Shown here one piece after another: positions 545-38,852 of a DNA stretch of 63,542 bases (position 1 is the first letter of the stretch; each line of letters begins with the position of its first letter). The notes under the pieces are model-generated. The model was not told where the DNA came from. It did no database searches and saw only the letters and a program-made list of their open reading frames with translations. This DNA is from Hyphochytrium catenoides (Eukaryota; Protista; Hyphochytriomycota). The position numbers and the translations under genes are program-made. The stretch is taken from positions 1 through 63,542 of the forward strand of contig FLMG01003040.1 of NCBI GenBank assembly GCA_900088475.1, in the 5' to 3' direction.

Positions 545-2479
545 ATGACTGACGCAGACGCCATCCAGAAGGAGCTTCAGGTAACGACGATGCCCCTTCA
601 TTGCATCACGCCCCACCGTTAAAGGGCCATAGGTAGTTCACTAACGATGGTCGCCATGTCCTTGTGACTTCGTTTCGTCTTCCCATGATGCTCTCTGATA
701 GGACTACTTACAAACCAAGAACATCAACAACCTCTTCATCACCATCGTCGAGGCGCTGCTCCTTGAGAAGCCTGATAATCCCATCAAGTTCATCGCCAAC
801 TACCTCAAGACACACTACCCAGAACAGCTAGGCGAGACCCAGAAAGCAGAGACAACGCACTCAGCCAGTCAGCCCATAATCCAGCTGGCAGGGAACAAGG
901 ACAAGGTAGTCTCTGACACTGAGGAGAGCGACCAGGACGAGGATGAGGACGCCCTCACCGAGATGAGTGCACCTGTTACTGTTCCTGTCAACAGAGGAGC
1001 ACGAAGAGTGTCGGTCTCGGCGGAGTCTGTTGACAACACGAAGTGGGTTACCGCTCTTTCATCTTATGCTCGCATCTCTCTCTTCTCTACTGCGCGCACC
1101 TTCTTTTCAAACAGTAGCTAAACAACACTGCCCCGTCTGCCCCTGTTGCCTCATCTTCGCTTTTTTGCTAGAAGAAAGAGCTATCAGGCCGTGGTCTACC
1201 CTAAATCGGATGTGGAGAAGGAAAAGATCCGTGCCATGTTGGCTAAGAACATCCTGTTCTCCAACCTTGACGACCATCAAATCGACGTGCTTCTGAACGC
1301 ATTCCAGCCCAAGGACGCGGCAGAGGGGGAAACTATCATCAAGGAGGGAGACAACGGTGATTTCTTCTATGTGGTCGAGTCTGGTATCTGTGAGATCTAC
1401 AAAGGAGAGAAGCTGGTGCTGACGGTATGTCCAAAGTCAAGCTATCATCTATCCTACTCTCTTCGCCATCAAGAGGTCCTGAGTATCTGTGTCGGGCCCG
1501 CCATCTTGATTGCTAACTCTTCGCTTCGTGTTCATGAAGTGCCTGTCAATTGTTTGACTGTTTAAATGACGGGAAGTTGCACTTCGCAGTCCATCTTTTT
1601 GAGTTCTTGCCAACCTTATCTACCGCAGTCTTTGATCTCACAAACCGCTCTTCCCGTGCTATTTATCCCACGATTAACCCTCATAGGTCACCGAGGCAAT
1701 GTCCTTCGGTGAGCTGGCGCTCATGTACAACGCTCCACGTGCTGCCACGGTTAAGGCTAAGTCCAGTGTCAAGCTGTGGGCTCTGGACCGTCTGACCTTC
1801 AAGTTTATCTTAGTGGATACTACAATGTCCAAGAGAGATCTGCATAAGAACTTCTTGAACAAAGTGCCAATTTTAGAGTCTCTCACGGAGTATGAGAGAC
1901 TCAAAGTGGCAGATTCTCTTTCTTCGGAGAAATATACCAAGGATGCCGTGATTATCAGGCAGGGAGAGAGCGGAGAAAAGTTCTACATTATCGAGGAGGG
2001 AGAGGCTGTGTGCACGCAGATCCTTTCCGAGGGCTCTGCGCCTATTGAAGTGGGGCGTCTGGGCCCTGGCTCCTACTTTGGAGAGATTGCTCTGCTGACC
2101 AGTCGGCCCAGACAGGCAACTGTCACAGCCTTAGGCGATGTCAAGTGCCTTTCTCTAGACCGAAAGACTTTCACGGTGAGGTGGATCCCTCTTGCTCGGC
2201 CGTACGCTTAACATCTACCTTGCACCTTCGAGCCCCTCTCTCTCTCTCTCTGTCTCTTCTCGTCCTTCAATCTTTCTGCTCCGTACGCTGCTGAAGCACT
2301 GGCCGCTTCTTCTCTTTCTACTCCGTGGTTTGTATTTGGGTTTCTGAACGTGTCAAATGTGTTTGCCTTGGAAGTTAATACTAATGCTTTATTTCTTCTA
2401 GCGCGTGCTGGGCAGCTTAGAGGATGTACTGAAGCGTAACATTGAGAAGTATCAGCAAGTCGTAGCGCACAACATCTAG
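545..2479 (+). CDS. PKAR: cAMP-dependent protein kinase regulatory subunit (5 exons)
   Basis: D/D domain (DYLQTKNINNLFITIVEALLLEKPDNPIKF), inhibitor site RRVSVSAES, two cNMP-binding cassettes FGELALMYNAPRAATV and FGEIALLTSRPRQATV. GT-AG introns join the ORFs; TAG stop at 2477-2479. Confidence 0.95.
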
Positions 2480-3538: not shown

Positions 3539-5624
3539 ATGGATGGAGCTAGCGCCGCAGAGCTTACGCCTCTGACGGCTGCGATGAAGATCTTCAGTAG
3601 TAGCACGTACAATGAGAGACTGGAGATCAGACCTGGCAGGCATATTCAGGTCCTACGCCTGACAGCAGCCCAGTACCGGGCATCATTTACGGAGGAAGTC
3701 GGGAAGAACTCTGAGGAGCCTGAAGAAGACGAGGATACTAGTACCGCCATCTTCTTTTACCATGGTTCCATGGCAACTATGGCCGACTATGGTCTTCTCA
3801 TGCGCTCTCTCTGCTTTGGGGCGGCTTCCCAGACGGAGCTAGAGAAGCCAGAGACAACAGGAGAAGCTCAGGAAGGGTCAAAAGAAGAGGGAAAGCAAGG
3901 GGCTACAAAGGAAATCCTGCTACATACGGATAGAGAAGGGGAAATGGCTCTTAATGATGACGTTCTGCTAGTCAGCTATGATGCTCTAGGCTGCGGAATG
4001 AGCGCGAAGCCTGAAGACCACGCTGCCTATTCTACCGAGGAGCTCTATGAGGATGCGCTAGCAGTATTTAGGCGGTTCAAGTGCAAGAAGAACCTGCTGG
4101 TGGGCCACAGCTTCGGCAGCAGTCTGGTCCTGAGACTTGCAGGTTGACTATCTCTCTATTCTCAAAAGACGGCACGTGGCTGTGTTTTCATTCAGCTTGT
4201 CCCACTTCTCGTTTCCATAAGCTCTGAGAGTTGCTCCTTCCGCTTTGTATCTCAGCCTGTGGAAATACTCCCCACTTCGTCCTTTTCTACTTCGCCTCGG
4301 TCCTTATGTTCTCTCTTCTTGCCCTCTGACTCCTCTCATTGTTATTCGAGTTTCACTCTGGCGCTCTCTCACATATGGACGATCGATCCAAGTTATTCTC
4401 CTCTCCGATCCATCTTTAAGGGCAAAACCTGACCTTTAGCTTTGGTCGTTGGCCTAGTGGATGTGGTCGGTCGTGTTGCTCGCACTCTCTCTTAGTTCTA
4501 TTCACTCGCATCGCTTCCAGACATCTCTTCTTTGCATAATAGTTTAACCAGAAGTATCTTACCATTTCCTTCCAGCCGCTTTGGATGCTAAACAAGAGGG
4601 TATTCTGGGCGTTATCCTGATCGGAACCACTCTTGGAGGCAGCTCTAGGAATGTTATGCGACAGCTTCTATTCTCTCTTCCGGTCTTCGTGCTCAGATGG
4701 CTGCAGGATGGACTTACAAGGTGAGACGGCTTCACAAGGGGACAAGTACCGAGGATTCCTGGAAGAAGTCCAAGGGCAAAGAGGCAGGTGGTTCTGCAAA
4801 TGCAGTATAGCCAATATGAGGCACATGTCGTGGGTTAAGGCCACTGAGTTCTTAAGGAGTCTACACCTTGGCTAGTTGTCTCTCTCATTTCAGCATCGTA
4901 TTGCCTGACCTTCCTTGATGCTTCTTGCCTAACTACTATTATTGTGGGGCCTTGTTCTTGTCAGACAATTCCTGGCGGCAGGCGTCCATCCCTCAGCGTC
5001 AGAAGAACTCAAGTCTTGGGTGACAGAGAAGTGCAATGCCAATGACATGGCCGTATGTAAAGCATTCTACAGGTAGAATAAGCAAGTGTGACTAAGAAAC
5101 GAGGCGGTGTTGTTAGCGAGAGGAGGACAGAGAGTGTGAAAGGCCGAGAGGGTTGATGCGACGGGGTTGAAGCTTCGATCAATACTTTCTCTACTTCGAC
5201 AAGATCTTGGGATGCTCTGGGACATCTTTGGTAGGGAGGCTCTAGTGCACCTAGCATCTACTCTGCTTCCTGAACTGCTTACCACTAGCCTTACCGAGTG
5301 GGCAAGCGCTGCCAAATGACATCATTAACTGAAATAGCAAGGCCAGTAGCGGCTTAGAAGCTCACTGGTGCTTGAAATGCCCTCAGGCAATTGAAGTGGA
5401 TAGACATCACCATGCTTTCTACCATCGGAACCGAAGTGCTTATCATCCAAGGCGATGAAGATCAGCTCACTCCTCTGCCTGGTGCTCAAGCCCTCAACGA
5501 AGAGCTGAAGAAGGTAACCGTCTCTACTCTGGCGGAGGTCAAGGAAGCCGGACACATGGTGCAATTGGAGAAACCGGACGACGTAGCTCAGATTATAAAG
5601 AAGTTCTTCTTTAGGAAGAACTAA
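3539..5624 (+). CDS. Alpha/beta-hydrolase (ABHD8-like; 4 exons)
   Basis: FYHGS oxyanion motif, YDALGCGMS, nucleophile elbow GHSFG, acid GDEDQLTP and His motif AGHMVQLEKP. Exons at ~4576-4720 and ~4965-5071 splice in via GT-AG. Confidence 0.88.
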
Positions 5625-9490: not shown

Positions 9491-11929
9491 TCAGCCTATC
9501 TCTTCATCGTCCGGTTGACTTGAACTCGGCTCCCCTCCGTCAGCCAACTGCGTCTGCTCGTTACCTTCCTCATACCACCATGGCTGCACTCGCTGCTTCA
9601 AAGCTAGGAGGCGATCTATAGGAGCAAATGACACTGGTGCAAGAAGAGAAGGAGGAACTTTGCCCTCAGAAAAGAACGTGTCATAGGCAGAAGATAGCTG
9701 ACCAGGAAACTCGTCAAGCCCTCGATGCATGTCCCATAGAAAGTGACTCTCATCAGGCAATAGAAGTCCTGCTTTGGCTGCCACTGTCTCTATCAAAGCC
9801 TTGAACTCTCTGGCTTCGTCTGTCTTCTCCTTGCTCGCCTTGGGCCCAGAAAGCTTTGTCTTTCTAAGATAAAGGCCGAGCTCTCTCTCTACTTGCTCCT
9901 TTGAGGGTGCCCACTCTAGCGTCCAAAGATCTCTTATGCCCTCGACGTCTTCTTCCAGGAGAAGCCCCAGAGTCACCATAAAGAGCCAGGGGAGAGACTC
10001 GAGCTGGGTAGCGAAACGAGGAGAATACTTCCCCCCTCGATAGTCCCGAACGACCATACGACAGATAAAGTTGACAATGTCGAACCTCCGCCCGCGGCCG
10101 GCTTCTACCAGCACCTCGTCGAACAGACAAACGCTTTGGAGGTATGTTTTCCGGTCTGCGATGACTGATGCGTCCACGCAGAGCTGAAATGCATCGTCTG
10201 GACGCCCTTGACTGAAGAAGAGGCGAGCCAGGGACCGCAGAAGCTCTTCATTCATTTGCAGAAGGACCCAAGGATAGTCCGACAAGAGAAGGGTAAACTC
10301 TTTGTCTGCCACCTGAATGCACTTCCCAACCAGCTGCTCAAGGACAACCACATAATTGGAAAGGTTCCCTCCGACTGCAGTCTTTGTTACTTCCGGCAAA
10401 TACATCGTGCCTTCTCTTTCCAAAATAGGGTCCATCTTGTCACTGCCTCCCTTCAGAGGCCGTTGTTCAGTCATTTTCCCATACCAATGGTCCCTCTGGC
10501 TTGAAAGTATCTCTACCATTCGAAGTCCATGACGTTTGGCCATCACTAGGCAGTCTGCTCTTAGAAAGAGAGCCAGCAAGGCTGCTTCAGCGTCCAGGCA
10601 AGTCTCTTCCTTTACGGTCAGCTTCGCTAGCAAACGACGAAGCTGCTCTTCTGAGGCCTTGACTTGGTGCACGTCCATTAACCCCAAAATCGACCACTGA
10701 ACAAGCATCTGTAGGAGCAGCGTTTGGCCTCCAGAGACTCCAGTGACCATATCCAAGAAGCGGAGAAGCCCTTCCGTATGGTTGACAGCAGCAAAGCACT
10801 CGAAGAAAACAACGACCGTATCAGTGTCAGAAAGGAGGCCATTCCTCTTCTTCTGTCCCATTTCTTCAAAGAGTCTGAAGACTTCTTTCACTGCATTCGG
10901 CTTCGTTCCTGCTTCAGCTATGATGATAGGGCACAGCACATTTGCGTACGCAGCCGCCGTCTTCGGAAAGCCAAAGCGCTCAAAAGAGTCAAAGACTTTC
11001 CTTGCTATCGTCACCCGCTCCTTTCCTTTCAAAAGCCTTCTTCGAAAAGCTCTCCCTCTCCNNNNNNNNNNNNNNNNNNNNNNNNNNNNNNNNNNNNNNN
11101 NNNCGGTGAGAGGGTGAACATAATCCTGATCCTGTAGGTAGGTAGAGGAATGTAAGCGGATGAGTTCCTCAATGACAGTCGCCTCTAGCTTCACACCGCA
11201 TCTCTTTAGCCTTTCTATGGGCTCCACGAGCAAGTCCCTTCGCTCTGTCTCATTCTCTGGGACCAGCTTTGTGTAGGAGAGAAGATACATGGCGGCGCCT
11301 ACAGGTGGTACTGGATATCCAAGCACACTAATCTGCTCGATGAGGTCTCTGCCCACAGAAAAGATGGCCTCCCTATTATTCCCAGAGGTCACTTCTTGCT
11401 TGAAAGTGTCCTCTAAGAAGGTTGTCAGAACGATACGGAAGACCTTATCATAGAGGTTGCCCTCCGCCGCAGCTTCAAAGTCTTTGTCTGATTGCCGCTC
11501 TACGTCCCTGCGGTAGGCATCTTGCAGAGCTTTGATCGCGTAAAGTTTGGAGTTTATCGTAGAACTGCTGCCATTGAGCTGGGTTGAGACACGCTTCAAA
11601 AAGGTCTCATCGGAGACATTCTCTTCAGTCGGCTGACTGGCGGGAATGTCATCAAGAAGTCCATATGGGATTTGGGGTACCTCTGGTGTCTCCGTAACTT
11701 CCACGTTAAACTCATTCAGTACGTTAAAGGCAGGATTTTTGCTCTGGAATTGGGAACCAGTAAGCTTCCTGTCGCTAAAAGGAGCAGCTGAGCCTATGGA
11801 GTCAGCCTTGGGGCCCAGCCTCCTGCTGATCCTCTGGTCCCGGCTGAGACAGGACTCTCTTCCGCCCTTTGAAAGCCCAGACGTAACCGGCAAACATCGG
11901 CAGCCGATGAGTGGCCTCAACCGCTTCAT
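9491..11929 (-). CDS. Intronless ~812-aa helical-repeat (PPR-like) protein, probably mitochondrial
   Basis: Long ORF that stays in frame across the N gap; basic N-terminal presequence (MKRLRPLIGCR...); PPR-like segments KVFDSFERFGFPKTAAAYANVL...VFRLFEEM and LARLFFSQGRPDDAFQL. Confidence 0.65.
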   Translation of the reverse strand: MKRLRPLIGCRCLPVTSGLSKGGRESCLSRDQRISRRLGPKADSIGSAAPFSDRKLTGSQFQSKNPAFNVLNEFNVEVTETPEVPQIPYGLLDDIPASQPTEENVSDETFLKRVSTQLNGSSSTINSKLYAIKALQDAYRRDVERQSDKDFEAAAEGNLYDKVFRIVLTTFLEDTFKQEVTSGNNREAIFSVGRDLIEQISVLGYPVPPVGAAMYLLSYTKLVPENETERRDLLVEPIERLKRCGVKLEATVIEELIRLHSSTYLQDQDYVHPLTXXXXXXXXXXXXXXXRGRAFRRRLLKGKERVTIARKVFDSFERFGFPKTAAAYANVLCPIIIAEAGTKPNAVKEVFRLFEEMGQKKRNGLLSDTDTVVVFFECFAAVNHTEGLLRFLDMVTGVSGGQTLLLQMLVQWSILGLMDVHQVKASEEQLRRLLAKLTVKEETCLDAEAALLALFLRADCLVMAKRHGLRMVEILSSQRDHWYGKMTEQRPLKGGSDKMDPILEREGTMYLPEVTKTAVGGNLSNYVVVLEQLVGKCIQVADKEFTLLLSDYPWVLLQMNEELLRSLARLFFSQGRPDDAFQLCVDASVIADRKTYLQSVCLFDEVLVEAGRGRRFDIVNFICRMVVRDYRGGKYSPRFATQLESLPWLFMVTLGLLLEEDVEGIRDLWTLEWAPSKEQVERELGLYLRKTKLSGPKASKEKTDEAREFKALIETVAAKAGLLLPDESHFLWDMHRGLDEFPGQLSSAYDTFFSEGKVPPSLLAPVSFAPIDRLLALKQRVQPWWYEEGNEQTQLADGGEPSSSQPDDEEIG

Positions 11930-14900
11930 GTTGGATTTAATCTCTTACTAACTAGTGCTATTCCCGTACCTGGGAAGGCTAATCGCCAAGAAATGCATGG
12001 CCATAATAGTCATCGGGACAGATATCCCAGTCAAGACATGTTACCATTCATACCTTACGTAACGATAAGCCATCCCCGCCGTCGACACACTCACCGTCAG
12101 GAAGAACGTCCAGTCTTGCAATTGACAGGAGTAGTCGGAGCATGGACCTCTTAGAGAGAGATGGAGAAGGTGTAGCATTGGCAGTGTGCTCTCATCAGAT
12201 ATCATGAAGCTTCATTGTTGAGATTCTGCAGGCTTCCCTTGAGCTTCTCCACGCAGCGCCATCAACAATAACACACATCAGGTAACCCGGTTAACTATGG
12301 TGCATCCACCCACACCAAAATCGCTACGAATAACTACTGGACAAGTAACTCGGGCACTAACTAGGTAACTAGGGTACTTCCTGATTTCGTCCTAAATCGG
12401 CCTTTCGGTCCCATAAAGGCTACAGTACGTTTGTGGAGTGTGGAACACTGCAAAACCCGGAGTAACACGAAAATAGAGAGAAGGCCGAATAATGATGTTT
12501 GCCTGCTTGAGATAATTACTTCACCATCAGCAAATCATCAAAACTGGAAGAAGAAGAAGAAGAAGAGGAAGAAGAAGAAGAGAGGCCTGTCGTCCTTATT
12601 ATTATTTATGATGATGAGGAGGAGTGCGCCTGCATCAATCACAGAAGAAGCAAGCGCATCTTCTCTGGCTTGAATGCTCTGGGTAAGGCGCACATTTGCA
12701 CTACTGTCATGATTATTAAGAGGCAGCAGTAGAAGCAAACTGGAGAAGAGCTCTTCGTCACATAAGAGGAAAGCAAGCAATGCGGCAGCAGTGCTACCGA
12801 CCAGCAGCAGCAGGGAGATATTCTTCCTATTAGTTGTGGTGCATTTCGCAAGAAGCAAACAAACCATGAGATAATACCGATAGCAAGACGGATAGTGTCA
12901 TTCTACTAATGCTGCTGTCGAAGGAAGTGCAAAGGCACTAGAGAACAGAGGAAGAAGAACCAAAAGGCGGCGAAGATTGAAAGGAACTGCACTCTATCTT
13001 TATTTAGAGGAGGAAATATTCCTCCATCACCTACGCAGAAGAAGTAAGGGCCAGGTTTAGCAGCAAGGCTTGAGAAAAAGAAGAGCCTTGATCAATCATT
13101 GAGAAGTGAGGAAGACGACACCGCCTGAAGAAGCGTGAAAGGGCATATCTCTGCCGCAAGATGCGGTCTAGAGATTTGGCTAGTGTGAGCGACGGCGAAG
13201 AAAAAGGAAGGCAAGAAAGATGGCTCTTTACACATAAGAAAAAATATAGTTCTATATACCATGGATTCGATCTGACAGTCTCACAGTGGCGGTTGGGCTA
13301 TTATGATGATCAATAATGGCGCTAGCTGCCAAGCATTGACTGGCAGATACTAGTATATGCTTCACAAGATCTATGCGACAAAGCCTCACCATATGACCAC
13401 CCTTGCACTTACCTGTTGTGCCTCATCAGAGGCATTCCACACAGATGTTCGGAGTGAGACAGAAGATATGAACACATTATTGGTAGTTCTTTCGCACCAA
13501 AAAAAGTTTCTTATCTTCTCTGTTTGTCACCTACTTGCTGCGTCTACCTTTTCGTTCTCCGAGATAACCCTTCTTTATGAAGCAAGTATGACGAGTAGGA
13601 CTCTAGGGAATGGAGATAGTGAAGACTTTATTCTTCTTCACTACTGTTCACTTTACCATTTTCAAATGACAACTTTAACATCTGTGTCTCACGATTAGGC
13701 CCCTAGAAAGTCTTCTACAATCGTTTTATATGCAAGGACCTTCTGTTATGACTCTGTGCACTCTCTCTGTAAGAACCTTCTTAGAGTTCTTACATCATGA
13801 GATGGGGAGCTGCCTAGCTTGTAAGGAACAATATTGACTCACATGTAAGCTTTTCCCCGCCTAACCCTCTGACCAATGAGGGAAAGGTCTCAAGGCCCAC
13901 ACGCTTTACGGCAGAAAGAGAAGGCGAGTTTGCACCAACAACCTTTTACTTTAATCCTAATAACTACACTGTATGTGCCAATAAGCATCAAGCTAGCAAA
14001 TATCAGGAGATGATGTGTATTATAGCTTCTTCCTTAAGATTCAGGCTCAGGCAAGATCTTTCATTATGGGTGTGTGTACTACTACCACTGCTCATAAGTA
14101 GGAGGAAGAAGAATCGAAAAACGAAGGAAGCTTAACGACTCATCAGCGGCTACAATATGCCAACAAAAGGAATGCGAGTAAGGAACAGGCAGCAAGCTAG
14201 CATCTAACTCATCATCATCAAACAATAAAAGAGTTTGCCAAGATAAAGTGGTGGAGGCCATTGATGAACAGCGGCACGTCAAAGGCTCATCATCGGTCCG
14301 AGGCACAACAAGAGAAAGCTCCTGAAGGTAAAGAAGAGGAGAAGGAAAAGAGAAGGGAAACCCTACGGCTCTGCAACCCTATACTTAGCCAGTAGAGGCG
14401 AAGAAAGTGTAACATTGATGCTGGGTACAGAAGAGACAGCTGCAACGACAAGAATGCAGCAAGAGGAGCAGAAGGCAGTGGAGCGATGAAATAAACGTTG
14501 AGAAGGGCATTCCTCAAAGCAGCGACCGACAGAAAGGAAAGAATGAGGAGGACAAAGAGATATTACAGATTGCATGAGAACGAGTACCAGAACGGGAGAA
14601 TGACGAAGGCGAAGGAGAGCAGGATGTACCGACAGACTGGCAAGTGGCACAGAAGAACTATAGAAAAGTGTTTGATCACTCATGGCATACCTGACCGCGA
14701 GGGAGAAGACAAAGCTCACTTTCCTGTCCGTACTTATTCCCCCTATTAATAAAAGTACGTGGCACACCGTCTCTATCTTCTTCCTTCCTGATGATCGCTG
14801 TCGAAATAACATCAAAAGGAAGGAGGATGATTGATGAGTAGAGAAAGAGACGGTGAATTGAAGCAGAAGCTCCACCACCCTCCACAGTTGCGTAGAATGG

Positions 14901-16492
14901 CGGGGCAAGAAGGAGAATAGTATCAAGATCCTAGTACAGCCGTATCTTTCTGGTTGATTGATGATGTCTTGATGTCCTGCTGCAAGAGAACAGAAGCGTC
15001 AACTAAGGTCTTCTATGCTGCTGTCATCAATCATCTTAGACTTACTTCCTACTAGCGAAGAAATGGATCTTGATGATCATCAGCTGGTGTCTCCAGAGCT
15101 TTGAGAGCCAGTCTATCGAAGAATAAACAGTTCTATCTACCTCGCTCATCAAGCACAGACTTGTCGGTCATTTATACAGGGGCAGCAATCCTCCCATCAT
15201 CATCATTTCTTCTACCCTATAAAGATATGGGAAGGTTTTTTTTTGGTTAAACCCTACTTTTTATACATCAGTACCAGGAAAGCCCAGTACAGGGTAGCCG
15301 TGTACAGTACCTTTAGGAGAAAAAGGGGGTTTAGAGTGGTCTTAGTGGTAGAATAACGGCCGAGCCGATGACGAGGGAGGGCCGACAGTGGGGCAATGTC
15401 CATAGTTATTACCCCTCCTCCCTATCTTCTTCCTCTGCCTTCTTCCTTTAGCCGGTTGATTTCCACCCCAACGGCTCAGGTTCCATGCACAGACAAGCTA
15501 GTCAGGCAGTCAGGAGGAAAAGAAGTAGGAAGAGCACTTGTAAAGACCTTGTCCTCTTCTTCTCTCTCTCTCCTCTCCCTCCTCCTCATGAGGTGACTTA
15601 TTGGTCCTTCCCTCAACGAAGTGGGGCACTTCTGTTGTGAGGATAGGCAACACAGAGGGTGACTGATGTAGGAGGAGAAGGAGGGATGGGTTAACTAACC
15701 ACGAGAGGTAGTCAGTGCTCTTTAGTCTGGTGGCCTCTGGCCTCGTGCTGTCCCCGACAGTGAGAAGGATACGGACCCGTACATGTGGTCTTCCCTTCTG
15801 ACTGTTTCGGTTTCCCCTCCCTTGCTCTCACACTCTAGGAAGTAAAGAAGGTGGTGTTCGTTATGCTGGTTCTAGTTGCTTGATGTTTTAAATTTATGCG
15901 TGTGCCTTCACCGTGAGGAAGAAGGACTGAGATCTTTACCACATCGCATGTTTTACGTTACTCTTAGCCAAGTGCCCCTGCCCTGCCCCTGCTGCGCTGA
16001 AGAGTTGTCCTAGCTCTTCCCCCCAAGTTCAGTAAGATGCAGGATGATGGCACTTCTGATGGCCTGCCGTTGCTCCTCCTTGCCTGAACCTTTCTGATCC
16101 GTCTGGCATAGAATCAAAGGTTAGAGGCGGAAGCAGGGTGCGACACAGTCCTCGCAATCGTATCATCATCCTATTCTTTTTCCCCCACTTCAATAGGCAA
16201 CAAGGGAAGCAACATAGGACCAGACAGATGATGATGGCTCTGTATCGCAAGCATATAATGCAGAGGAAGTTCTTGACTGTACTTGTCGCTGACCACATCA
16301 GTTTAGAGACAGAGTATCATCATGCCTGCATGTGTAGTGCACCATAGCAGTATGAGTAAGGAAGAGAGAGACTTTGTCCTGTCCACTCTCGCTCCGGCAC
16401 ACTCGATACACTTCTGATCCCACCCCAGATCCCACTGGGAAGGAAGTAGAAACGGAGATCATAAGCTCCTCTTGTTGCTAGAGAAGAACATC

Positions 16493-16505
16493 CTCACTTC
16501 TCAAT
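16493..16505 (+). promoter_or_regulatory. Putative oomycete-type initiator CTCACTTC upstream of the BAS2-like gene
   Basis: CTCACTTCTCAAT ~70 nt before the ATG; fits the YCAYTY initiator core known from oomycete promoters. Confidence 0.4.
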
Positions 16506-16570
16506 ATACCTCCAACTACGCAATCATCACCAAGACCTAACTTTCCGTCTAACAAACCTCAAGACGAAGG

Positions 16571-17698
16571 ATGCGTCTCGGACTTATCGCAACGACTCTT
16601 ACCTCTGTCATTGTACTGCTTCATTCCTCTGTGGACCCAGTGGTGGCTAAGACTTTCATCACTGATGTCTGCAAGAGTGATGATGATTGCTTTTCTGGAT
16701 GCTGTGGCTTCAACACCGGCAAGTGTGCTGGTCCAGTAGTCGCTCAAGAGCGCGATGGCGGCTGTGGATTTGGCAATGCTCAGCCTAACGCAAACGCTGC
16801 AAAGGCTCTCGGGTCATCTATCACTGCCGCGGCTATTGGACAGGCCAACCGTGGGGCTGCTGCTGGAAAGCAACCAGCCACTGGCGGTGCTGCTGCCAAG
16901 GCTCCCGCGCCTCGTGCCGCAGGCAAGAAGACATTCATCACAGATGTGTGCACGAGTGATGCTGATTGCGCTTCTGGATGCTGTGGCTTCAACACGGGCA
17001 AGTGCGCCGGCCCAGTAGTTGCTCAAGAGCGCGACGGTGGCTGTGGATTCGGCGATGCTCAGCCAAACGCAAACGCAGCCAAAGCTCTCGGGTCATCTAT
17101 CACGGCTCCAGCTATTGGACAGGCAAACCTTGTGGCAGGAAAGCAGGCTGCCACGGGAGGTGCTGCTGCCAAGGCTCCTGCTCCTCGAGCAGCAGGCAAG
17201 AAGACGTTTATCACAGACGTCTGCACGAGTGATGCCGATTGCGCTTCAGGATGCTGTGGCTTCAACACCGGCAAGTGTGCCGGCGCAGTAGTTGCTCAAG
17301 AACGAGACGGCGGCTGTGGCTTTGGCGATGCTCAGCCGAACGCAAATGCAGCAAAGGCTCTCGGATCAGCTATCACTGCCCCGGCGATTGGACAGGCCAA
17401 TCGTGGGAATGCACCCGCAGGGAACCAGGCCAACACTGGTGGTGCTGCTGCTGCCAAGGCTCCAGCTCCGCGAGCTGCAGGCAAGAAGACGTTCATCACT
17501 GACGTCTGCACAAGCGATGACGATTGCGCTTCAGGATGCTGTGGCTTCAACAGTGGCAAGTGTGCCGGGCCAGTAATTGCTCAACAGCGCGATGGCGGCT
17601 GTGGCTTTGGCGATGCTCAGCCCAACGCCAACGCTGCAAAGGCTCTGGGTTCGTCAATCAGAGCACCTGGCGTTCCACAGAGAAGGCTCCTCCGCTAA
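16571..17698 (+). CDS. Secreted protein with four tandem 6-Cys domains resembling the fungal biotrophy-associated secreted protein 2 (BAS2) family
   Basis: Signal peptide MRLGLIATTLTSVIVLLHSSVDPVVA; four copies of (K)TFITDVCxSDxDCxSGCCGFN(T/S)GKCAGxV(V/I)AQxRDGGCGFG (C-x5-C-x3-CC-x6-C-x12-C) separated by Ala/Gly/Pro linkers; intronless. Confidence 0.88.
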   Translation: MRLGLIATTLTSVIVLLHSSVDPVVAKTFITDVCKSDDDCFSGCCGFNTGKCAGPVVAQERDGGCGFGNAQPNANAAKALGSSITAAAIGQANRGAAAGKQPATGGAAAKAPAPRAAGKKTFITDVCTSDADCASGCCGFNTGKCAGPVVAQERDGGCGFGDAQPNANAAKALGSSITAPAIGQANLVAGKQAATGGAAAKAPAPRAAGKKTFITDVCTSDADCASGCCGFNTGKCAGAVVAQERDGGCGFGDAQPNANAAKALGSAITAPAIGQANRGNAPAGNQANTGGAAAAKAPAPRAAGKKTFITDVCTSDDDCASGCCGFNSGKCAGPVIAQQRDGGCGFGDAQPNANAAKALGSSIRAPGVPQRRLLR

Positions 17699-18310
17699 AA
17701 AGAGAGGAAAGTTGGCCTTCGTGGACGCTCCCTGCAAGCGATGGTTATCTCTTCTTCTCAGTGTGTATACCTAGCTTTTCAAGTCGTCGGAAGTGTCCGG
17801 TCGGGACACTCCACGCTCAAGAACAGGGCATGTGGTCCCAGCTTACTCGGTGGTGTGCGGCTTTAACGCGGACGTACCGCACAGATAAGACAGATCCATC
17901 CGTCGTTGGTGAACCTTCACAACGACCACTATAGAACTCTAATAAGAGTTATTAAGGGGGCATCGACCTTTAACATAGATTTTCAATTTCTCTTAAATGC
18001 ACATTCTAGCTCATGATAACGACAGATCTCCATTCACTCTGTGCACCATTAAAGGCGATAGATGGGAGTTGTTAGCCATAACGCAATGAGCAGAGCGTTA
18101 TCTTTATCCGGACAGACAATACTTCTCAGTTCAATTCACATACTCACTCATAACCGCCATGAGACCGAAGGGGACAGGACAGGCAGGTAAAGAACAACAA
18201 GACGTGGAGGTTAGCCAGGATAGAAGAAGACAGGAGCAATAATCATGACGAGCAGATCAGCTTATGAAACCCCGAAGAAGGTCTTTCTCAAGAAAAATGG
18301 TAAACTCGCT

Positions 18311-19745
18311 TTAGGACGCTGAATTATAGAAGTGGTAGTTATGATAGTAGTAGATAGAGTTGTCTACAAGGAACCGCATTAGACTGCCCAGCAATGGTGT
18401 CTCCTTTGTTCCCTGGCAAACCTGTGAAGCAAGAGTCAGTGGGTTCCAATCACGGCTAATAAAACGAGAGTTTTGGTCTTCTAGCAACTACCTTTTCTGC
18501 AGCTGGAGCTGTGTGCTTGGTGAAGAACGGCTCNNNNNNNNNNNNNNNNNNNNNNNNNNNNNNNNNNNNNNNNNNNNNNNNNNNNNNNNNNNNNNNNNNN
18601 NNNNNNNNNNNGCGCTTGAGGTGAGTGAGGAACATAATAGACTGTACAAACAGTTAGAAAGCCACAAAAGCTCGTCAGGCTAGCTACTCGTCTTACCTGA
18701 GAGCGTCAGTAAGCAGGGAAAAAGCGAAGGGTTTCCACGAGGTTTTCGGATATTGGGACCTGTCATGCATCATGCCGCGTTAGATAATTCTAGATGAAGA
18801 GTCATCGTCGCAGTACTTTACCTCGACAAAACGTAGACTACCGGTCTTAGAATATGAAGTACCTCTCCTAACGTTTGAAGGGGGCCTTCTCGTCCGGAAT
18901 ACTCCGTGGCTTCTCGCACAACGCATTGCATGGGCTCTTTGCAAAATGAAATTGTCAGAAGAGAAGGCCAAGAATAGGGCGGGCATGAATAGCCATAACA
19001 GATACCTGCGGTAGGCATCGGCTGAGATGGATTGGTTGCCGTTTTAGGGGCCAAGTACTAATTTCTGGTGTCAGCTTACGTAGGGCGGCTATGTCATCAT
19101 GATGGCTTACCTGCCCACCGCTGAGTAAGACTTTGGCGCGGCCTTTGTAGAGTATGTAGAGCTTAAGAGCACACTTCAGTAGTTCCACTCTGACTATCTG
19201 CAGGTTTGATTGAGAGCTCAACCCCTAATAGTGACCAAGGAGCCTCCATCGAACCCACCAGCTTCCACGCTCCTGCCACTCCTCCCCAGCGCCTAGCTAT
19301 AAGCTCTGCTATGACTTCAGTATGCGCTAAGAGCGTCAGAATAAGTCTGGATGGGTCCAATTCTCTAAACGGCAACACGATGCATCAGGGTTGGCCAGAG
19401 TCTGCATCGAATAGGGAGGCGGAGCCAACTCACCTCAACCTGGGCAACCTTCGCTGGGGAGTAGCCGTTCTTGCTGAAGCGATGACTATGTTGTGGTATA
19501 GGCTCAAGAGGCCTACGGTTGAATATCCCGCCTCGGTCATAAGCTCCTTGTCCGGAAACTGTGGAATGAGAGTTAGCGGCCAGCAATGCACATTAGCAAG
19601 CGTCGAAAGATGGGAATACCGGAAGTAGCGAAGGGGCGATGTAGATAATCTGCTCCAGCTGCCTAACTGCTGCAGCGTTTTTTCTAACAAAGGCATTATA
19701 TCTCTGTAAAGCTGAAATGACCGGATTGGAAGTCGTAGTCGCCAT
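18311..19745 (-). CDS. PEX16: Peroxisomal membrane biogenesis protein Pex16 (multi-exon; one exon partly in a gap)
   Basis: Spliced segments ELMTEAGYSTVGLLSLYHNIV, LLAHTEVIAELIARRWGG, VELLKCALKLYIL, GEVLHILRPVVY, SWKPFAFSLLTD, EPFFTKHT and PLLGSL...YHFYNSAS* follow the Pex16 motif order. Confidence 0.85.
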
Positions 19746-33429: not shown

Positions 33430-36400
33430 GACGAGCGGCTCTTCTCCTCTCCGGATAAACGGCTCAATCATCCCAACCACACAGATATTAAACGACTCGC
33501 CCTGCAGGCTTCCGGTATGGCCCTTGATAGAGCTTCTCAGCACCTTTCTTTGTGAGACCTGCATTCTTGCGAAGCTAACTCGTAAGCCTTACCAGTGCTC
33601 AGCCCCGTAAGACAACAAGACTGCTTGATCTTCTGCACGCCGACGTTGGCATTGTCAATACTCGTAGCTACCAAGGCTATGTACATTTTCTGTTCGTCGG
33701 GGATGATCACTCTCGAAGGTGCTTTGTTCAATTTCTTCGGAGCAAAGGAGAAGCAGAAGCTAAGTTGGAGGAGCTCATTCTGTTCATGGAAGAACCAGAA
33801 CGGTGAGCGGGTGAAGAAGATACGCTCCGATCGCAGGGGAGAGTTCGTTAGCAGTGCCGCTCGCTCGCGGAGTGTGCTCAAGCCGGGGGATACTGCACTC
33901 TCCTACACCTGCTTATTCATCCTCTAGCAAAGGATGCTGTGAACGCTGGATGAGGACTGTCATGTAGGCGACGAGTTGCCTTCTAATTGCTACTGACCTG
34001 CCTCATTGTTTTTTAGCAGATGCATTGGCCTCCGCAGTTCACGTCATCAATCGCTGTCCTACTGCCTCACTCGATGGCTCTACCACCTACGAAAAAGTGG
34101 TGTAATAAGCCGCCTGATCTTGGTCACCTACGCGCCTCCTTTCGTTCACTTGCGTATGCCTTGCAGCCATCAACGATGCTGCGAAAGCTTGATGCGCGGA
34201 GCTCTCGGTATAGAGTTGTAGGGTATGACTCTGGCACCCATGGCTATCGACTGTATGATCCTGTGACCAAGAGAATCTCTGTGCAACATCATGATTATGT
34301 CTCTTTGTTTCCCATCATAGGGAGCGAATAAGCAACTGCCGCTGAAGTAGGGCAAGTAGGTGGTGAAAAGAGTGCGGCGAGACAAGCAGAACAAAGAAGT
34401 GCACCTTCGGTTGACGCAGCAAGTCCAGAAGAGCCCACCAGTGACTTTCTTCTGGAGCCGGAGGCGAGAGCAGCGTTGCTGATGAAGCCCATCCGGCAGC
34501 TTCTTTTCCCTCCTCTCCGACCACAATCACTTCTCCACTCATTCCTATCCCTATCACCCGTGGTTGGTCGTGGTCGACTGCGCAGGAAGACTCTCTCTCT
34601 TTTCCAATAGGCCAGGCTAATCTTCTGCATGTCTCTGAACCCAAGATAGTCCGCGAGGCACTCTCCGGACCTCATGCCACAGAATGGCTAGCCGCCATTA
34701 CCTCAGAGCTTACATCAACAATGCAGTTCAATGAGGTTTACGATCTAGTGCCTCCACCCCCAGGCGCTCATATCATCGGCTCTCAATGGGTCTTTAGGGT
34801 CAGGTTGCATAGCGATGGCTGCGTGGACAAATACAAGGCTCGTCTGCTCGCTCTTGGCAATCAACAAAAGCAAGGTATGACTTTAGCGAGATCTTTGCTC
34901 CAGTAGTGATAGGGCATGACACTGTGCGCTGCCTTCTCTCGCTCGCCGCCACGCTGGATCTAGAAGTGCACCACGCGATAATAAGACCTCCTTCCTGGAT
35001 GGAAACTTAGACGAGCAGGGTGTACATGCGGCAACACCCCGGTTTTGCAGCTCCTGGACAAGAAGATCACGTCTGGAGGCTGATGAAGAAGTCGATATAT
35101 GGTCTCCGCCAGAGCCCCAAGATGTGGAAGAATGACACGCTGCACCATTATTCTGATTGAGTAAGGGTCCCAGCGCAGCGTCTGTGACTTTGGAATGTAC
35201 GTCAAGCGGCACTACTCTTCAATGACCTGATGACCTTGAGACCGTCGGCGTCTTCGTTGATGACATGCTCCTCTTTGCTCCCAACACCGAGCAGATTGTA
35301 GGTCTCAAGACTATGCTGTCTGCTTGTTTCTCCATCGCCGATCTAGGGGAGATAAGAGTACTACTTGGGCATCCAAGTAAAGCGGGATAGAGCTGTAGGA
35401 AGATATACCTTCGACAGTCGAAGTATATCACCGAGAGCTTGGAGCGCTTCAACCTACTTGATTCCTACCCAAACCCTGTCCCAGCGGTGCTAAGACGTAC
35501 TTGCCCAAAGCTTCTACCATTCCTCTTTCGGATGATGAAGCTGACCGGTTCGCTCGCACCCCTTATCGCCAAGCAGTGGAGTCTTTGTTTTATGTCATGG
35601 TGTGCACGCGGCCTGATATCGCTTATTGCATTGTTGCAAGCTGTGAGCCAACATGTAATTGCCTTCCGCCACGTCCGCTGGGCGGCTGTCCAAACGTATC
35701 TTCACCTACCTCACGGCCACCCAAGATTACTCCTTGTCTCTAGGAAAAGATGCTCCTGTTGTTCAACTCTCGGTACTGGCTGATGCTGATTGGGCTAGTG
35801 ACCCAGCTGACTGCAAGTCTATTACAGGTTATCTATTATTGAGCCTCAACGGCGGTGCTTTTGCGTGGAAGTCAACAAGAAACAATCTCTCCGAGCGTCG
35901 TCAACGACGGAAGGGGAGTGCGTTTCTCGTTGGTCCGCAAGCCAGGTCGCAGAGCACTTCAGCGTGTTCCTGAGCGAGCTTGGCTTCTCCAACCAGCTGC
36001 CCATTCACATTAGCCAGGATAACAAGAGCGCGATTGTTCTCTGCTCCTCTCACGACCAAAGTCAAATACCTTAGAGTGTCCTGCAAGAGAAGATAGCCCA
36101 TGATGGGAGAATTAAGCTGGTCTACACTCCCTCTGCAGCTATGGTAGCCGATGGCCTCACCAAGCCTTTACCCGCTCCTCTCTTTCGGATACTGCGTCCT
36201 CACCTTGGAGTCCTCCCTCCTAGTATCAGTACTCTTGCCACTACCCACCCAGCTTTGTCTGCCGACACGGAGAGGAGAAACGTGAGTGAGACCGACAAAT
36301 TGGTGAGTTATTCGACCGTCACCACTGATGGTCCAGAGAAGCTAGGCATGACGGGAAGTGTTGAGTGCTACAATGCTCGTTGTCAGTGGTACATTCTCTA

Positions 36401-36610: not shown

Positions 36611-38838
36611 TCATACAGCAGCAGAAGCAGCGTAGTAGTAGTAGTAGCTTCAGGCACCCATCCTTCCAGCTCTGTAAGTTTCATGAGGAGGCAAGAAGGC
36701 TGTCCCAGGCAGGAGAAGACAAGATGAAAGGAGATTCATCAACAACAAAGGCGAAGAGGCCACAAGCTTCAAGCAGCAGAGCTCGAGAGTCTTTCGTATC
36801 TTCTGCGAGGAGAAGATCTGTCGTCCCTAATTTACCTTCTTCTTGACAAAGCAGTAGCAACATGTCCATCGATCCTACCATTTCCTCTGACGAGGTGGAG
36901 CACTTAGTGACATAGAGTGATCGATGGATGAGTGTGACGTGCGTGATGACGTTGAGGCATCAATTCCTGCAGCAAGCGAACTACCACGACGAGCCAGAGA
37001 AAAAGACATAACGTGAGTCGCTTGTATCCTCCTACTAAGAGGAATCCTCATGACAAGGAGGTGCGATGACTGCGTGTCACGTCGTCTTGCCCCGGCTTAA
37101 GGTTGCCAATACAGCTATTGTTCTTCGTTATTATGATCCAAGAGAACATAATAATACATGGACCCAAGAAGCATCATCCACTTATTACTCATCATCATAC
37201 GACAACTGTTGCCTGCTACATTTTGCTATGCAGTGAAAGCCACCGCCCTTTCTTTCAAGGTCATCATTCTACTCATCTACTACTAATAAGGCTACTCATC
37301 CATAATCAGCAAAAAGATAATAACAAGAGCTCGCGGCGGGGTATGTCACCCTCCCACCGTACAGGCCCCAAAATGGTGTGTGAACTGCTTTGGGAGTGGT
37401 GGAGGTGCCCCCGTTCTCTATAGCCCCTACTTGTACAAGCGTGAAGGTGGTGGCTTGTTGCCATGGTTTCTTGGCCATCCTGATAGTGAGCCCTAAGATC
37501 GAAGGGCCCACAATTTCCAAAACGGTAGTTCGAGGCATTACTACCCAGCTCCTGTGAAAGGTGGAAGAAAACAATGTCAGTACCACAACATTTCCATTTT
37601 TTTTGCCAAGCTGAGTTTTCACTACAGTAGCAGCTTTCCTGCTGGAAAATTGCGAAAGCTTCAGACCTTTGTTTCAAGGGGTTGGTTCAAGAGCAAGGGA
37701 GGGGTGGCCCGGCCCACTAGAGGGACAGTTCTCGATTTTTGGACGCCAACCGCCATTTTATCCTTGGTGATGAGCTCACAACCCCACTACGAGTACCATA
37801 ATACCGTCCATTTAACAGCCTCGCTAATGAGTTCTGAATAAAACGGCACTGAAAGGGGTTGGAAAGGCTTGCTTGTTCTTTTATAAATAAGCGTCTAGAG
37901 AGGACCATGAGTTATTCTTCCGTAGGTTCTCGAGAAAATAGAAGCCACTTCTTCATCGCCATGATGATGGCTTCAGTCAACAAAGATGTGGTGGAGGAAT
38001 CGTCAACAAGTACGAACATAATAGGAAAGTACTCAGGCCTCCTCCTCGTCGCCTACAGATATATTGTCTCTTTTGTTGTAGATCCCCATCCCGTCACCCA
38101 TCTTCAGCTTTCGCAGCAGAAGCTTCAAGGAAGGAAGGCGTCCTCATCATGCAGTATGGGCTAGTGAAGCGCCATGAAGAGGGAGCTATTATTATAAAAC
38201 GGTGGCGACCTGCTGGAAGAATTGGTCCATCAGGAGGTAAATAATAAAGTGACAGCTGCTGGTGTAAGATAGAGCTGGCTGCGATTATCATCGGTATTCT
38301 GGCCGCTGGCAAGAAAGAAGAAAAACAGCTCTCCCCTGTTGCTGCTGGTGGTGGTACAGACCCAGGTTTTGCTGACGCTCACCACCACCGGTGGTGTTCG
38401 ACGATTTTTAATGAGAACAGAAGGGTTGGGAGGAGATAATTTTTATATATAATGAAAACAAGTTTAGCAATGATACAGATCTTTTTCCTTCCGTGGTGGT
38501 TGAAACCCGGCTTTATCATGGTGCGTACAGATAGTGGGTTGACTTTGTTGTGTTACTGCCAGCCATCACCATCAATCCAGTGACGACACGGTGCAAATCT
38601 TAGGAACGTTACGGTCCCATTAGATAAAAAGAAAGCTCGTCATTATCCCTGCTATGATCCTCGCCTGCTGCTTCTGCTCAGAGTCAGAACGAGTGATATA
38701 TCATTAGAGGATTTCCCAAGGCTCACTTTGACTTTGTGGAGGAAAGGGAAAGCGGACATTTAGCCTTTAATGACAAAAGAGGCTACGGCTGATGAAGGTT
38801 GAAGCACCAAGCCTTCTCTCTACGACTCTTCTTCCGTT

Positions 38839-38852
38839 CTCACTTCCAAATA
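38839..38852 (+). promoter_or_regulatory. Putative oomycete-type initiator CTCACTTC upstream of the crystallin-like gene
   Basis: CTCACTTCCAAAT ~100 nt before ATG 38948. Confidence 0.4.

Follow-up and report, generated by a model that had tools for sequence, protein, structure and literature searches.

Gene transfer from fungi to oomycetes is a textbook case in which gene sharing helped convergent "fungal" lifestyles. Forty-eight fungus-to-oomycete transferred families have been reviewed (PMC4447370). Hyphochytrium catenoides, a fungus-like stramenopile described as free-living, has a genome of 4758 scaffolds plus the mitochondrial genome; viral scaffolds are among them, and such viruses have been proposed as transfer vectors (PMC5795050). 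Giant viruses of zoosporic fungi have also been described (PMC13533422).

The closest described proteins to the one considered here are the fungal BAS2 proteins. The rice blast fungus secretes MoBAS2 at its biotrophic interfacial complex (PMC10669146). Deletion of CgBAS2 reduces penetration and lesion size and also affects conidiation in culture; deletion of MoBAS2 gives no phenotype (PMC6073657).

Here, we describe a BAS2-family gene in a 63,542-nucleotide stretch of H. catenoides DNA, which is referred to below as the window. We propose that this single-copy gene probably stems from one old horizontal transfer from a chytrid-type fungal donor, either directly or via a large DNA virus. An initial annotation, made from the sequence alone, had read the gene as a candidate Dikarya-type effector acquired from a fungus; parts of that reading are revised below.

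Architecture of the gene and its product

The locus was first annotated as an intronless ORF coding for a secreted protein with four near-identical domains, and that description holds (secretion as judged by inspection). The 375-aa frame has zero internal stops and contains four tandem units of 91 to 95 aa (Table 1), starting at aa 27, 120, 211, and 306. Each unit carries one 57-aa six-cysteine module, for a total of 24 cysteines, and the FITxxC-type motif quoted in the initial annotation is present in all four. Tandem Repeats Finder reports a single array of 3.6 copies with 84% matches, while a separate repeat search at the locus gives 4 copies of 271 nt.

The protein is presumably secreted, as suggested by an N terminus in which Met-Arg is followed by a 15-residue hydrophobic stretch, a V-V-A small-residue site, and then module 1. 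Cleavage probably occurs immediately N-terminal to the opening Lys of module 1. This call was made by inspecting the sequence and aligning it with homologues; the signal peptides of three homologues (P0029, P0046, and P0111) end at the same module start.

Magnaporthe oryzae BAS2 and Colletotrichum gloeosporioides BAS2 share with the window protein the 57-aa module, its tandem arrangement on low-complexity linkers, and a signal peptide, and the modules have in common the blocks CC-G/A-F, G-K-C-A-G, and R-D-G-G-C-G-F-G. The window gene differs from these fungal genes in its stramenopile host, in a module start of T-F-I-T-D-V-C as opposed to the Dikarya Q-F-I-T-G, and in Ala/Gly/Pro/Lys-rich linkers with a Lys-Lys junction. 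Moreover, no link to biotrophy is known for it.

Table 1. Features of the BAS2-family locus and its surroundings (positions in the window)
Feature	Position	Strand	Remarks
BAS2-family gene	16571..17698	+	Intact ORF, ATG start, 375 aa + stop, intronless
Signal-peptide-like N terminus, aa 1-26	16571..16648	+	Inspection and homologue alignment
Tandem array of module + linker units	16649..17650	+	Period 273 nt
BAS2 module 1	16646..16816	+	57 aa, 6 Cys; 91% identical to P0053 module 1
Linker 1	16817..16924	+	Ala/Gly/Pro/Lys-rich, low-complexity, C-terminal Gly-Lys-Lys
BAS2 module 2	16925..17095	+	Alignment
Linker 2	17096-17197	+	Resembles linker 1
BAS2 module 3	17198..17368	+	98% aa identity to module 2 despite dS 0.68
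Linker 3	17369-17482	+	Resembles linker 1
BAS2 module 4	17483..17653	+	Followed by short basic tail with Arg-Arg pair
812-aa orphan ORF	9491..11929	-	In frame across N gap 11062-11103
Upstream stretch without recognizable gene, 4.6 kb	11930..16570		ORF list and Pfam
Dispersed repeat, ~490 bp	13305..13795		At least 12 other contigs carry copies (66-80% identity)
N gap right of gene	18534..18611		Spanned onward by one Logan contig
Pex16 exons	18818..19745	-	PF08610 positions 1-248; convergent with BAS2-like gene

Integration into the H. catenoides genome

The gene is a nuclear, single-copy gene of H. catenoides, integrated into the genome and not a contaminant. The BAS2 family occupies a single locus in the assembly of 4759 records. 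Because the N gaps lie at 11062-11103 and 18534-18611, the gene sits within a gap-free stretch of 7.4 kb (11104-18533), and this stretch is tied to the host genome by the dispersed repeat that recurs on other contigs. Logan contigs from two libraries of different samples (2011 and 2017) tile positions 12534-18533, with depths of 26-36 and 414-480 over the gene and of 20-34 and 200-420 over the flanks. One Logan contig of 1575 nt (run X1) starts in module 4 and extends 564 nt beyond 18533. The flanks carry allelic variants among the Logan contigs, as expected for diploid H. catenoides, and the GC3 of the gene is 0.485, compared with 0.49-0.61 in neighboring ORFs. The claim that the island is contiguous with host sequence is supported by even depth in two libraries, tiling contigs, the host repeat, and host-like GC3. 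None of the RNA runs contains this stretch.

These data bear directly on the alternative that the gene came from a chytrid in the culture or from a false scaffold join. The fungal type of the sequence, the N gaps on both sides of it in the scaffold, the adjoining 812-aa ORF without homologues, and the origin of all DNA runs in one study would fit such a contaminant or chimera. Nevertheless, the matching depths of gene and flanks, the overlapping contigs across the whole 6 kb, and the contig that joins module 4 to sequence past the right gap all argue against it, as do the host-wide repeat in the same gap-free stretch and the GC3. Moreover, the assembly holds no second BAS2 copy or other contaminant trace, and the contamination screens of the genome paper were negative (PMC5795050). 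We therefore give this explanation hardly any weight.

The surroundings of the gene are indeed gene poor, as first described: all seven ORFs or open frames examined in 11930-16570 lack Pfam matches. No LTRs, TIRs, relic donor genes, or viral genes were found near the gene. The 812-aa ORF had been called PPR-like but has neither a Pfam match nor a homologue in a protein search; as an orphan, it is of no use as a taxonomic anchor and was dropped as such. The left N gap does lie inside this ORF, in agreement with the initial annotation. The companion claim, which places the right gap within Pex16, is plausible at most, as the candidate last exon to the left of that gap (18311-18487) has no Pfam match when the Pex16 exons are searched individually.

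Elsewhere in the assembly, a rhodopsin ORF matches HcCCR of H. catenoides (PDB 8gi9/8ifu) with 456 bits over 195 aa, in keeping with the earlier recognition of a stramenopile-type pseudofungus genome. The 4759 records of the assembly also agree in number with the published 4758 scaffolds plus mitochondrial genome (PMC5795050). Nuclear 18S rRNA gives a single match, on the last record of the assembly.

Family membership and distribution

Assignment of the domain to the BAS2 family is secure. A protein search with one repeat unit returned 44 matches, with E values down to 1.7e-42 and 59-90% identity over the module; 41 of these are annotated with PF28293 (named BAS2), and all 44 carry or match it. 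A search with the whole protein returned 305 matches (best E value, 4e-152), and an exhaustive profile search found 235 clusters in 1.84 billion proteins. The match lists considered here cover the best 120 of the 305 and the best 150 of the 235, and about one-quarter of their entries are named. Nothing on function was gained from a direct Pfam-A scan (with a model set without PF28293), a sequence search of the PDB, or the ESM Atlas.

In an alignment of 30 sequences, 16 columns are invariant, including the six cysteines, and 9 more are near-invariant; all are kept in the four window modules. The conserved cysteine spacing, C-x5-C-x3-CC-x6-C-x12-C, is also present in the four modules, together with Gly/Asp blocks. 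Single modules of the window protein are 70-91% identical to family modules, with values of ~82% for chytrid proteins, up to 91% for cellular metagenome contigs, and ~70% for the viral protein P0029. Tandem organization is common in the family: three modules occur in 116, four in 30, and five in 7 of a set made up of 308 proteins and the query.

All named homologues among the matches listed belong to the Ascomycota, Basidiomycota, or Chytridiomycota. No named non-fungal cellular homologue appears among the ~200 matches listed, from databases rich in oomycete, diatom, plant, and animal proteomes. The unit search thus yields significant fungal matches and, among the matches listed, no named stramenopile homologue. 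Several of the closest relatives (P0053, P0020, P0016, and P0231) are metagenome sequences that have no taxon label and could be non-fungal. Outside H. catenoides, BAS2 is seen only in fungi and on two giant-virus contigs among the named matches listed.

Two metagenome contigs were considered as possible relatives of the locus and set aside. Contig L015 seemed to show synteny, with a proteasome gene, a PPR protein gene, and BAS2 in the order of the window; the two large neighbors are unrelated (E = 5). Contig L017, which carries the closest homologue, was considered as coming from a relative of H. catenoides and does not, since the module alone matches (72-77% at the nucleotide level); identity over a mitochondrial-carrier fragment is 50%.

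Probable donor and age of the proposed transfer

Since the family is distributed across fungi and one stramenopile among the matches listed, a transfer from the fungal side, as first suggested, is the best reading. The initial annotation had further regarded BAS2 as a Dikarya family. That restriction must be dropped: the family also occurs in Chytridiomycota, and the window modules carry the "TFITDVC" signature, which is common to the chytrids Globomyces and Phlyctochytrium, in place of the Dikarya form "QFITG." In a maximum-likelihood tree of 57 columns, a 96/93 split places all four modules with a chytrid/virus "TFITD" group. However, an AU test on the same 57 columns leaves placement with the Dikarya-type group unrejected (P = 0.32); a single clade of all four modules is not rejected either (P = 0.125). 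The phylogeny therefore favors a chytrid-type relationship and leaves the Dikarya-type placement standing in the AU test. Taken from these sequence features, the donor group was probably of the chytrid type.

The chytrid genes offer a direct comparison. Proteins of Globomyces pollinis-pini (P0005 and P0021) and Phlyctochytrium planicorne (P0064) resemble the window protein in the T-F-I-T-D-V-C start, a Lys-rich junction ahead of the module, and Ala/Pro-rich linkers, and their modules are ~80-82% identical to those of the window. Two modules are present in the chytrid proteins seen, along with an additional N-terminal Cys-rich region in P0064, and the genes flanking these chytrid genes are unrelated to those of the window.

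Between the four modules, dS is 0.56-1.08 and dN/dS is 0.01-0.12, indicating that the duplications are old and that selection has been strong. Likewise, the host-like GC3 and the near-saturated synonymous sites between repeats point to a transfer long ago. Amplification of the domain after the transfer, as had been envisaged, is possible; it is also unnecessary, as multi-module proteins are the norm in fungi.

An ancient eukaryotic family that descended vertically in hyphochytrids and suffered near-total loss outside fungi would account for the same gene. The module is extremely conserved, such that chytrid and Dikarya versions are 60-80% identical and high identity alone is no proof of recent transfer. 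Against vertical descent stand the lack of any named non-fungal cellular homologue in the lists described above and the position of the window modules inside fungal diversity, with one chytrid subgroup, and not outside it. We regard this scenario as extremely improbable. On balance, the locus offers a credible case of an old fungus-to-hyphochytrid transfer.

Giant-virus copies of BAS2

A new finding is that signal-peptide-bearing BAS2-family genes occur on two different metagenomic giant-virus contigs. The first (L010; GC content, 26%) encodes a minor capsid protein P8, a Pox_A22-type resolvase, an adenain-like protease, PCNA, and the small subunit of RNR. The second (L014) belongs to a 115.8-kb contig on which D5_N primase, P9_TM, and DUF5767 are also found. 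Both viral proteins fall into the same "TFITD" tree group as the window modules. In the viral proteins, TFITD is followed by S, N, or D, not V, and there is an extra Cys-x-Cys tail. No BAS2 relatives were found in IMG/VR or in a phage collection. A search of the H. catenoides genome for the NCLDV major capsid protein (PF04451) gave no match, and neither did its control.

These copies raise the prospect that the direct donor belonged to the giant viruses (Nucleocytoviricota) and had captured BAS2 from a zoosporic fungus that it infected before passing it to the hyphochytrid lineage during infection or integration. The grouping of both viral proteins with the window modules is consistent with this route, as are the viral scaffolds of H. 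catenoides, the vector proposal made for them, and the existence of giant viruses in zoosporic fungi. However, the window modules are nearer to chytrid and metagenome modules than to those of P0029, the sole viral protein in the domain alignment, and they lack the viral residue after TFITD and the viral tail. The clean surroundings of the gene and the result from IMG/VR also argue against a viral donor, and the flanks are heterozygous in the manner of normal diploid DNA, whereas the viral scaffolds have few SNPs (PMC5795050). We thus consider a virus an unlikely direct donor.

A broader and somewhat less probable proposal, which we offer as speculation, is that BAS2 might be a wall or surface toolkit module that moves among unrelated zoosporic, chitin-walled osmotrophs (chytrid fungi and hyphochytrids) on the giant viruses infecting them, with the H. 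catenoides gene as a domesticated remnant of one such delivery. If true, the gene would give the virus-vector idea of the H. catenoides genome paper its first concrete example at the level of a single gene. The viral copies also provide a testable path for eukaryote-to-eukaryote transfer without phagocytosis.

Predicted fold and proposed function

The AlphaFold2 model (pLDDT, 84.5) suggests a knottin-like fold class. Its best structural matches are nearly all knottins, with rmsd of 0.5-1.8 Å over 26-32 N-terminal residues, although E values of at least 0.4 and Z scores of at most 3.1 are not significant alone. Foldseek against the PDB likewise returned nearly all knottins (E values of at least 2.3), VIA-align gave Z scores of at most 3.1, and the best match in BFVD was a conotoxin-like protein (E value, 0.44; rmsd, 0.5 Å over 28 aa).

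Known knottins, such as the squash trypsin inhibitor EETI-II, spider and cone-snail toxins, and baculovirus conotoxin-like proteins, have a C-C-CC-C-C framework with an adjacent third and fourth cysteine, as in the window modules. Also, some BAS2 family members have weak precomputed matches to squash-inhibitor and gamma-thionin Pfam models. The window module departs from knottins in that its last cysteine comes 12 residues later, after a helix, and is followed by a second helix. The likeness lies in the cysteine framework and may extend to the fold; it does not speak to protease inhibition or toxicity.

We propose the following working model. Once the signal peptide is removed immediately before module 1, the exported protein would consist of four small disulfide-locked modules on flexible Ala/Gly/Pro-rich spacers, each with a predicted knottin-like N-terminal core of ~30 residues followed by two short helices. 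Every module probably binds one conserved extracellular partner, and with the same partner for each of the four, binding would be multivalent. As that partner, we favor part of the cell wall or surface of H. catenoides itself, or else a secreted protease, rather than a target specific to a host.

Alternatively, the protein might be a polyprotein from which a kexin-like protease, cutting at the Lys-Lys pairs and at the tail Arg-Arg, would release four near-identical knottin-like peptides of ~6-9 kDa. Every linker ends in Gly-Lys-Lys directly before a module, P0231, P0064 (Phlyctochytrium), P0016, and P0069 have the same Lys-rich junction, and in many proteins of the family the C-terminal tail contains a dibasic pair. 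The repeated small secreted units with basic pairs between them also recall the Kex2-processed repeat proteins of fungi. However, the window has Lys-Lys in place of Lys-Arg, and Lys-Lys is a poor kexin site. One Lys of each pair also belongs to the module itself, since module 1 opens with Lys right after the signal peptide. Furthermore, most multi-module BAS2 proteins have no basic junction; multi-module linkers in Dikarya occur without any basic residue (e.g., P0191), so processing between modules is not a family trait. Cleavage into peptides is therefore doubtful, and we retain the intact multivalent protein as the working model.

Finally, the BAS2 name and the initial annotation both suggest a host-targeted effector in a parasitic interaction. 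The site of MoBAS2 secretion and the penetration and lesion defects of CgBAS2 mutants speak for such a role. Nevertheless, H. catenoides is described as free-living (PMC5795050), the MoBAS2 deletion has no phenotype, and CgBAS2 acts in culture too. Saprotrophs, lichen fungi, and chytrids of pollen or soil also show strong conservation of the family, and its dN/dS in the window is very low, unlike what is seen for fast-evolving effectors. The effector assignment is thus very unlikely to be correct here. Constraint on BAS2 in a free-living protist, together with its presence in giant viruses, favors a basic extracellular function over a host-specific effector role.

Comparison with fungus-to-oomycete transfers

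Few small secreted Cys-rich modules of fungi are as conserved as that of BAS2. Its acquisition by H. catenoides would be a separate, old, and selectively kept transfer into hyphochytrids, implying that such exchange is wider than the plant-pathogenic oomycetes, and zoosporic fungi, which share the same pollen, soil, and freshwater niches, are indicated as donors.

This locus differs from the fungus-to-oomycete cases described by Richards and co-workers in several respects. The window family is absent from oomycete proteins among the matches listed; the recipient is a hyphochytrid, a lineage that served as an outgroup in that work; and the donor appears chytrid-like, as opposed to a filamentous ascomycete. 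The parallels are nevertheless close. In both settings, a secreted fungal-type protein with a patchy distribution is found in an osmotrophic, fungus-like stramenopile, and in both, duplication would have occurred after or around the transfer.

A four-module BAS2-family gene

The BAS2-family protein starts, in translation, with Met-Arg; a hydrophobic run of 15 residues and then a small-residue site come next. Its units, each a 57-aa module plus linker, start at amino acids 27, 120, 211, and 306. All 24 cysteines are accounted for by six in each of the four units. A second repeat search returned a 271-nt unit in four copies; the repeated element is the whole unit, module and linker together. The ORF listing, translation, and repeat searches bear out the four-domain ORF that the initial annotation had described, at the coordinates it gave. 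Overall GC is 58% because the ORF is Ala/Gly-rich.

Coordinates of the gene and other features of the window
Feature	Position	Strand	Remarks
BAS2-family ORF	16571-17698	+	375 aa, ATG start
Tandem array	16649-17650		period 273 nt, 3.6 copies, 84% matches (Tandem Repeats Finder)
N gap, left	11062-11103
N gap, right	18534-18611
Single-exon orphan ORF	9491-11929	-	812 aa; adjoins gene island
Dispersed repeat, about 490 bp	13305-13795		at least 12 other contigs in the assembly have old copies (66-80% identity)
Pex16	exons between 19745 and about 18818	-	right of gene; exons searched singly
Exons	702-2208	+	Dpy-30/RIIa-like motif plus two cyclic-nucleotide-binding domains; product probably a PKA regulatory subunit
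Open frame	34445-34903	+	weak RVT_2 (copia-type reverse transcriptase) match; probably a retroelement fragment
Open frame	38774-39271		no Pfam match

A local Pfam-A scan of the protein gave no significant match, and a PDB sequence search returned only a squash trypsin inhibitor, marginally. A word-indexed protein search with one unit as the query (16646-16921) retrieved 44 proteins, with E values down to 1.7e-42 and identities of 59-90% over the module. PF28293 (named BAS2) is precomputed on 41 of these 44, and "Biotrophy-associated secreted protein 2" is the UniRef label of many homologues, confirming the family assignment. In an alignment of 30 modules (A1; 57 columns), 16 columns are invariant and 9 near-invariant, with a mean column identity of 70%.

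Integration in the host genome

The assembly searched has 4759 records totaling 61.0 Mb, of which the window is one entire contig; for H. catenoides, PMC5795050 gives 4758 scaffolds and, in addition, a mitochondrial genome. One of its rhodopsin ORFs matches PDB entries 8gi9/8ifu ("HcCCR"), the H. catenoides cation channelrhodopsin, with 456 bits over 195 residues. The genome is therefore that of H. catenoides or a nearly identical organism (Stramenopiles, Hyphochytriomycetes), in agreement with the earlier description of a stramenopile-type pseudofungus.

The two N gaps place the gene within a gap-free stretch, 11104-18533, the left part of which holds the first 275 codons of the 812-aa ORF, in frame across the gap. 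That neighbor had been called PPR-like, a label that is unsupported: no Pfam domain was detected in it, and a search of 5.8 billion proteins brought up no homologue at E up to 0.001. Logan contigs from two DNA libraries that carry one organism label, dated 2011 and 2017, fully tile 12534-18533, and a 1575-nt Logan contig starts in module 4 and extends 564 nt beyond 18533, across the gap toward Pex16. Word depth in the two libraries is 26-36 and 414-480 over the gene versus 20-34 and about 200-420 in the flanks, where lower depth coincides with allelic variants; such variants are expected because H. catenoides is described as a heterozygous diploid (PMC5795050). The stretch turned up in no RNA run. 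GC3 of the ORF is 0.485, compared with 0.49-0.61 in neighboring ORFs. No LTR, TIR, or recognizable gene relic was found around the gene, and no local LTR or TIR was seen at the dispersed repeat. The module occurs at a single locus in the assembly; together with the tiling and depth, the gap-spanning contig, the dispersed repeat, and GC3, this makes contamination or a chimeric join an unlikely source of the gene. The gene is real, intact, and integrated in a stramenopile genome.

Distribution and donor

The whole-protein query retrieved 305 proteins (best E, 4e-152). Because the claim depends on absence elsewhere, an exhaustive profile search was run as well: of 1.84 billion representatives, no more than 235 clusters (50% identity) matched at E up to 0.001. 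Among the matches listed (best 120 of 305 and best 150 of 235), about a quarter are named, all of them fungal, and none is from an oomycete, diatom, plant, or animal. Among hyphochytrids, H. catenoides was the one species whose genome these searches covered. The named homologues come from Ascomycota (Pseudogymnoascus, Exophiala, Cladophialophora, Corynespora, Trichophaea, Thermoascus, Sporothrix, Hyaloscypha, and a lichen-fungus MAG), Basidiomycota (Marasmius, Mycena, Moniliophthora, Dichomitus, Volvariella, and Rickenella), and Chytridiomycota (Globomyces, Phlyctochytrium, Powellomyces, and Nowakowskiella), and an ESM Atlas look-up was consistent with this fungal distribution.

Modules carry one of two signatures: G-T-Q-F-I-T-G in Dikarya and Powellomyces and K-T-F-I-T-D-x-C in the window gene, Globomyces, Phlyctochytrium, and about 20 unnamed proteins. 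Module identity to the window gene is highest for three homologous proteins, P0053 (91%), P0020 (85%), and P0016 (84-86%), and reaches 81-82% for Phlyctochytrium and Globomyces. The initial annotation had proposed a Dikarya BAS2 origin, to be checked by homology search and phylogeny. The matches support its fungal side; "Dikarya" is too narrow, given the TFITD signature that the window gene shares with Globomyces and Phlyctochytrium. In a maximum likelihood (ML) tree of 85 modules, all four window modules fall in a 34-row "TFITD" group (split support, 96/93), while an AU test over 57 columns did not reject their placement with the other signature type (p = 0.32). A chytrid-type donor is thus the best-supported reading, not a proven one.

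BAS2 genes on giant-virus contigs

Two BAS2-family proteins, P0029 and P0188, are encoded on metagenomic contigs of giant viruses (Nucleocytoviricota). The P0029 gene (L010:8001-8279) lies on a 23-kb JGI contig (Ga0502774_0002313; GC, 24-29%) with genes for minor capsid protein P8 (E = 1e-24), a Pox_A22/Ydc2-type resolvase, an adenain-like protease, PCNA, a GH18 chitinase, and an intein-bearing RNR small subunit. The P0188 gene (L014:10001-10261) lies on a 115.8-kb JGI contig (Ga0502764_0000351; GC, 35-39%) beside D5_N primase, P9_TM, and DUF5767 genes. Both proteins have a signal peptide, belong to the "TFITD" group, and bear an extra Cys-x-Cys tail. No mention of BAS2 in viruses or in Hyphochytrium was found in the literature. 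The occurrence of BAS2 genes in giant viruses is new and was observed in passing.

Large DNA viruses have been suggested as gene carriers between fungi and pseudofungi (PMC5795050), a suggestion that these contigs fit. We nevertheless consider a viral route into the hyphochytrid lineage improbable, as the window modules are nearer to cellular chytrid-type proteins than to P0029 and no viral sequence lies near the gene.

Separately, a "TFITD"-type BAS2 gene occurs at 4467-4784 on a gene-dense JGI contig (Ga0400242_001445, L013; 11.5 kb, about 30% GC), with histidine kinase, PIF1 helicase, and B-lectin protein genes as neighbors.

Module amplification and selection

Across 308 family proteins and the query, 68 have one module, 88 two, 116 three, 30 four, and 7 five; the four-module layout is therefore ordinary. 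Modules of the same protein mostly group together in the ML tree, which suggests lineage-specific duplication or concerted evolution, and a single clade of the four window modules was not rejected (AU test, p = 0.125). Between window modules, dS is 0.56-1.08 and dN/dS 0.01-0.12; modules 2 and 3 differ by 1 amino acid and 18 synonymous changes. The modules were duplicated long ago, and strong purifying selection has acted on the protein ever since, which is the best available sign of a working gene.

A different pattern occurs in P0046, a four-module protein from a flagellate eukaryote (L015:10001-10981, a contig with CFA20). One canonical module is followed by three strongly divergent ones (K-K-L-I-F-N-D-C type), which sit on a very long branch of the tree and suggest neofunctionalized repeats.

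Structure and function

AlphaFold2 modeling on A1 yielded a small, confident model (pLDDT, 84.5), with short strands extending to about residue 28 and two helices, 30-37 and 46-54. Foldseek against the PDB matched EETI-II, hanatoxin, SGTx1, MCoTI, nemertide, and atracotoxin, weakly (E at least 2.3), with rmsd values of 0.9-1.8 Å over 24-29 residues in the better rows. VIA-align returned spider and cone-snail knottins, colipase, and Dickkopf (Z at most 3.1), and BFVD returned baculovirus conotoxin-like proteins (rmsd 0.5 Å over 28 residues; E = 0.44). Combined with the C-C-CC-C-C framework, these matches make a knottin-like core plausible, not proven. A short terminal tail with a dibasic pair is common among BAS2 proteins, and some of them have weak precomputed matches to the Pfam models for gamma-thionin (PF00304) and squash inhibitors (PF00299); these features hint at processing of the C terminus and at a relationship to knottins.

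Experimentally, MoBAS2 is known to be secreted at the biotrophic interfacial complex (PMC10669146), and its deletion gives no phenotype, whereas CgBAS2 deletion reduces conidiation and penetration (PMC6073657). For the window gene, the "effector" label was not borne out, as H. catenoides is described as free-living (PMC5795050) and module evolution is very slow. The product would be secreted, with its four disulfide-locked binding modules strung on flexible spacers, and would probably act on an extracellular partner that is conserved and belongs to the organism itself, either a protease or a component of the wall or surface. Cleavage at Lys-Lys junctions into four peptides is possible, but it would be no family-wide trait because Dikarya linkers lack basic residues.

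An old transfer into the hyphochytrid lineage from the fungal side, probably from a chytrid-type donor, accounts best for this BAS2-family gene of a stramenopile. The gene would join the known class of fungus-to-pseudofungus transfers as a further member.
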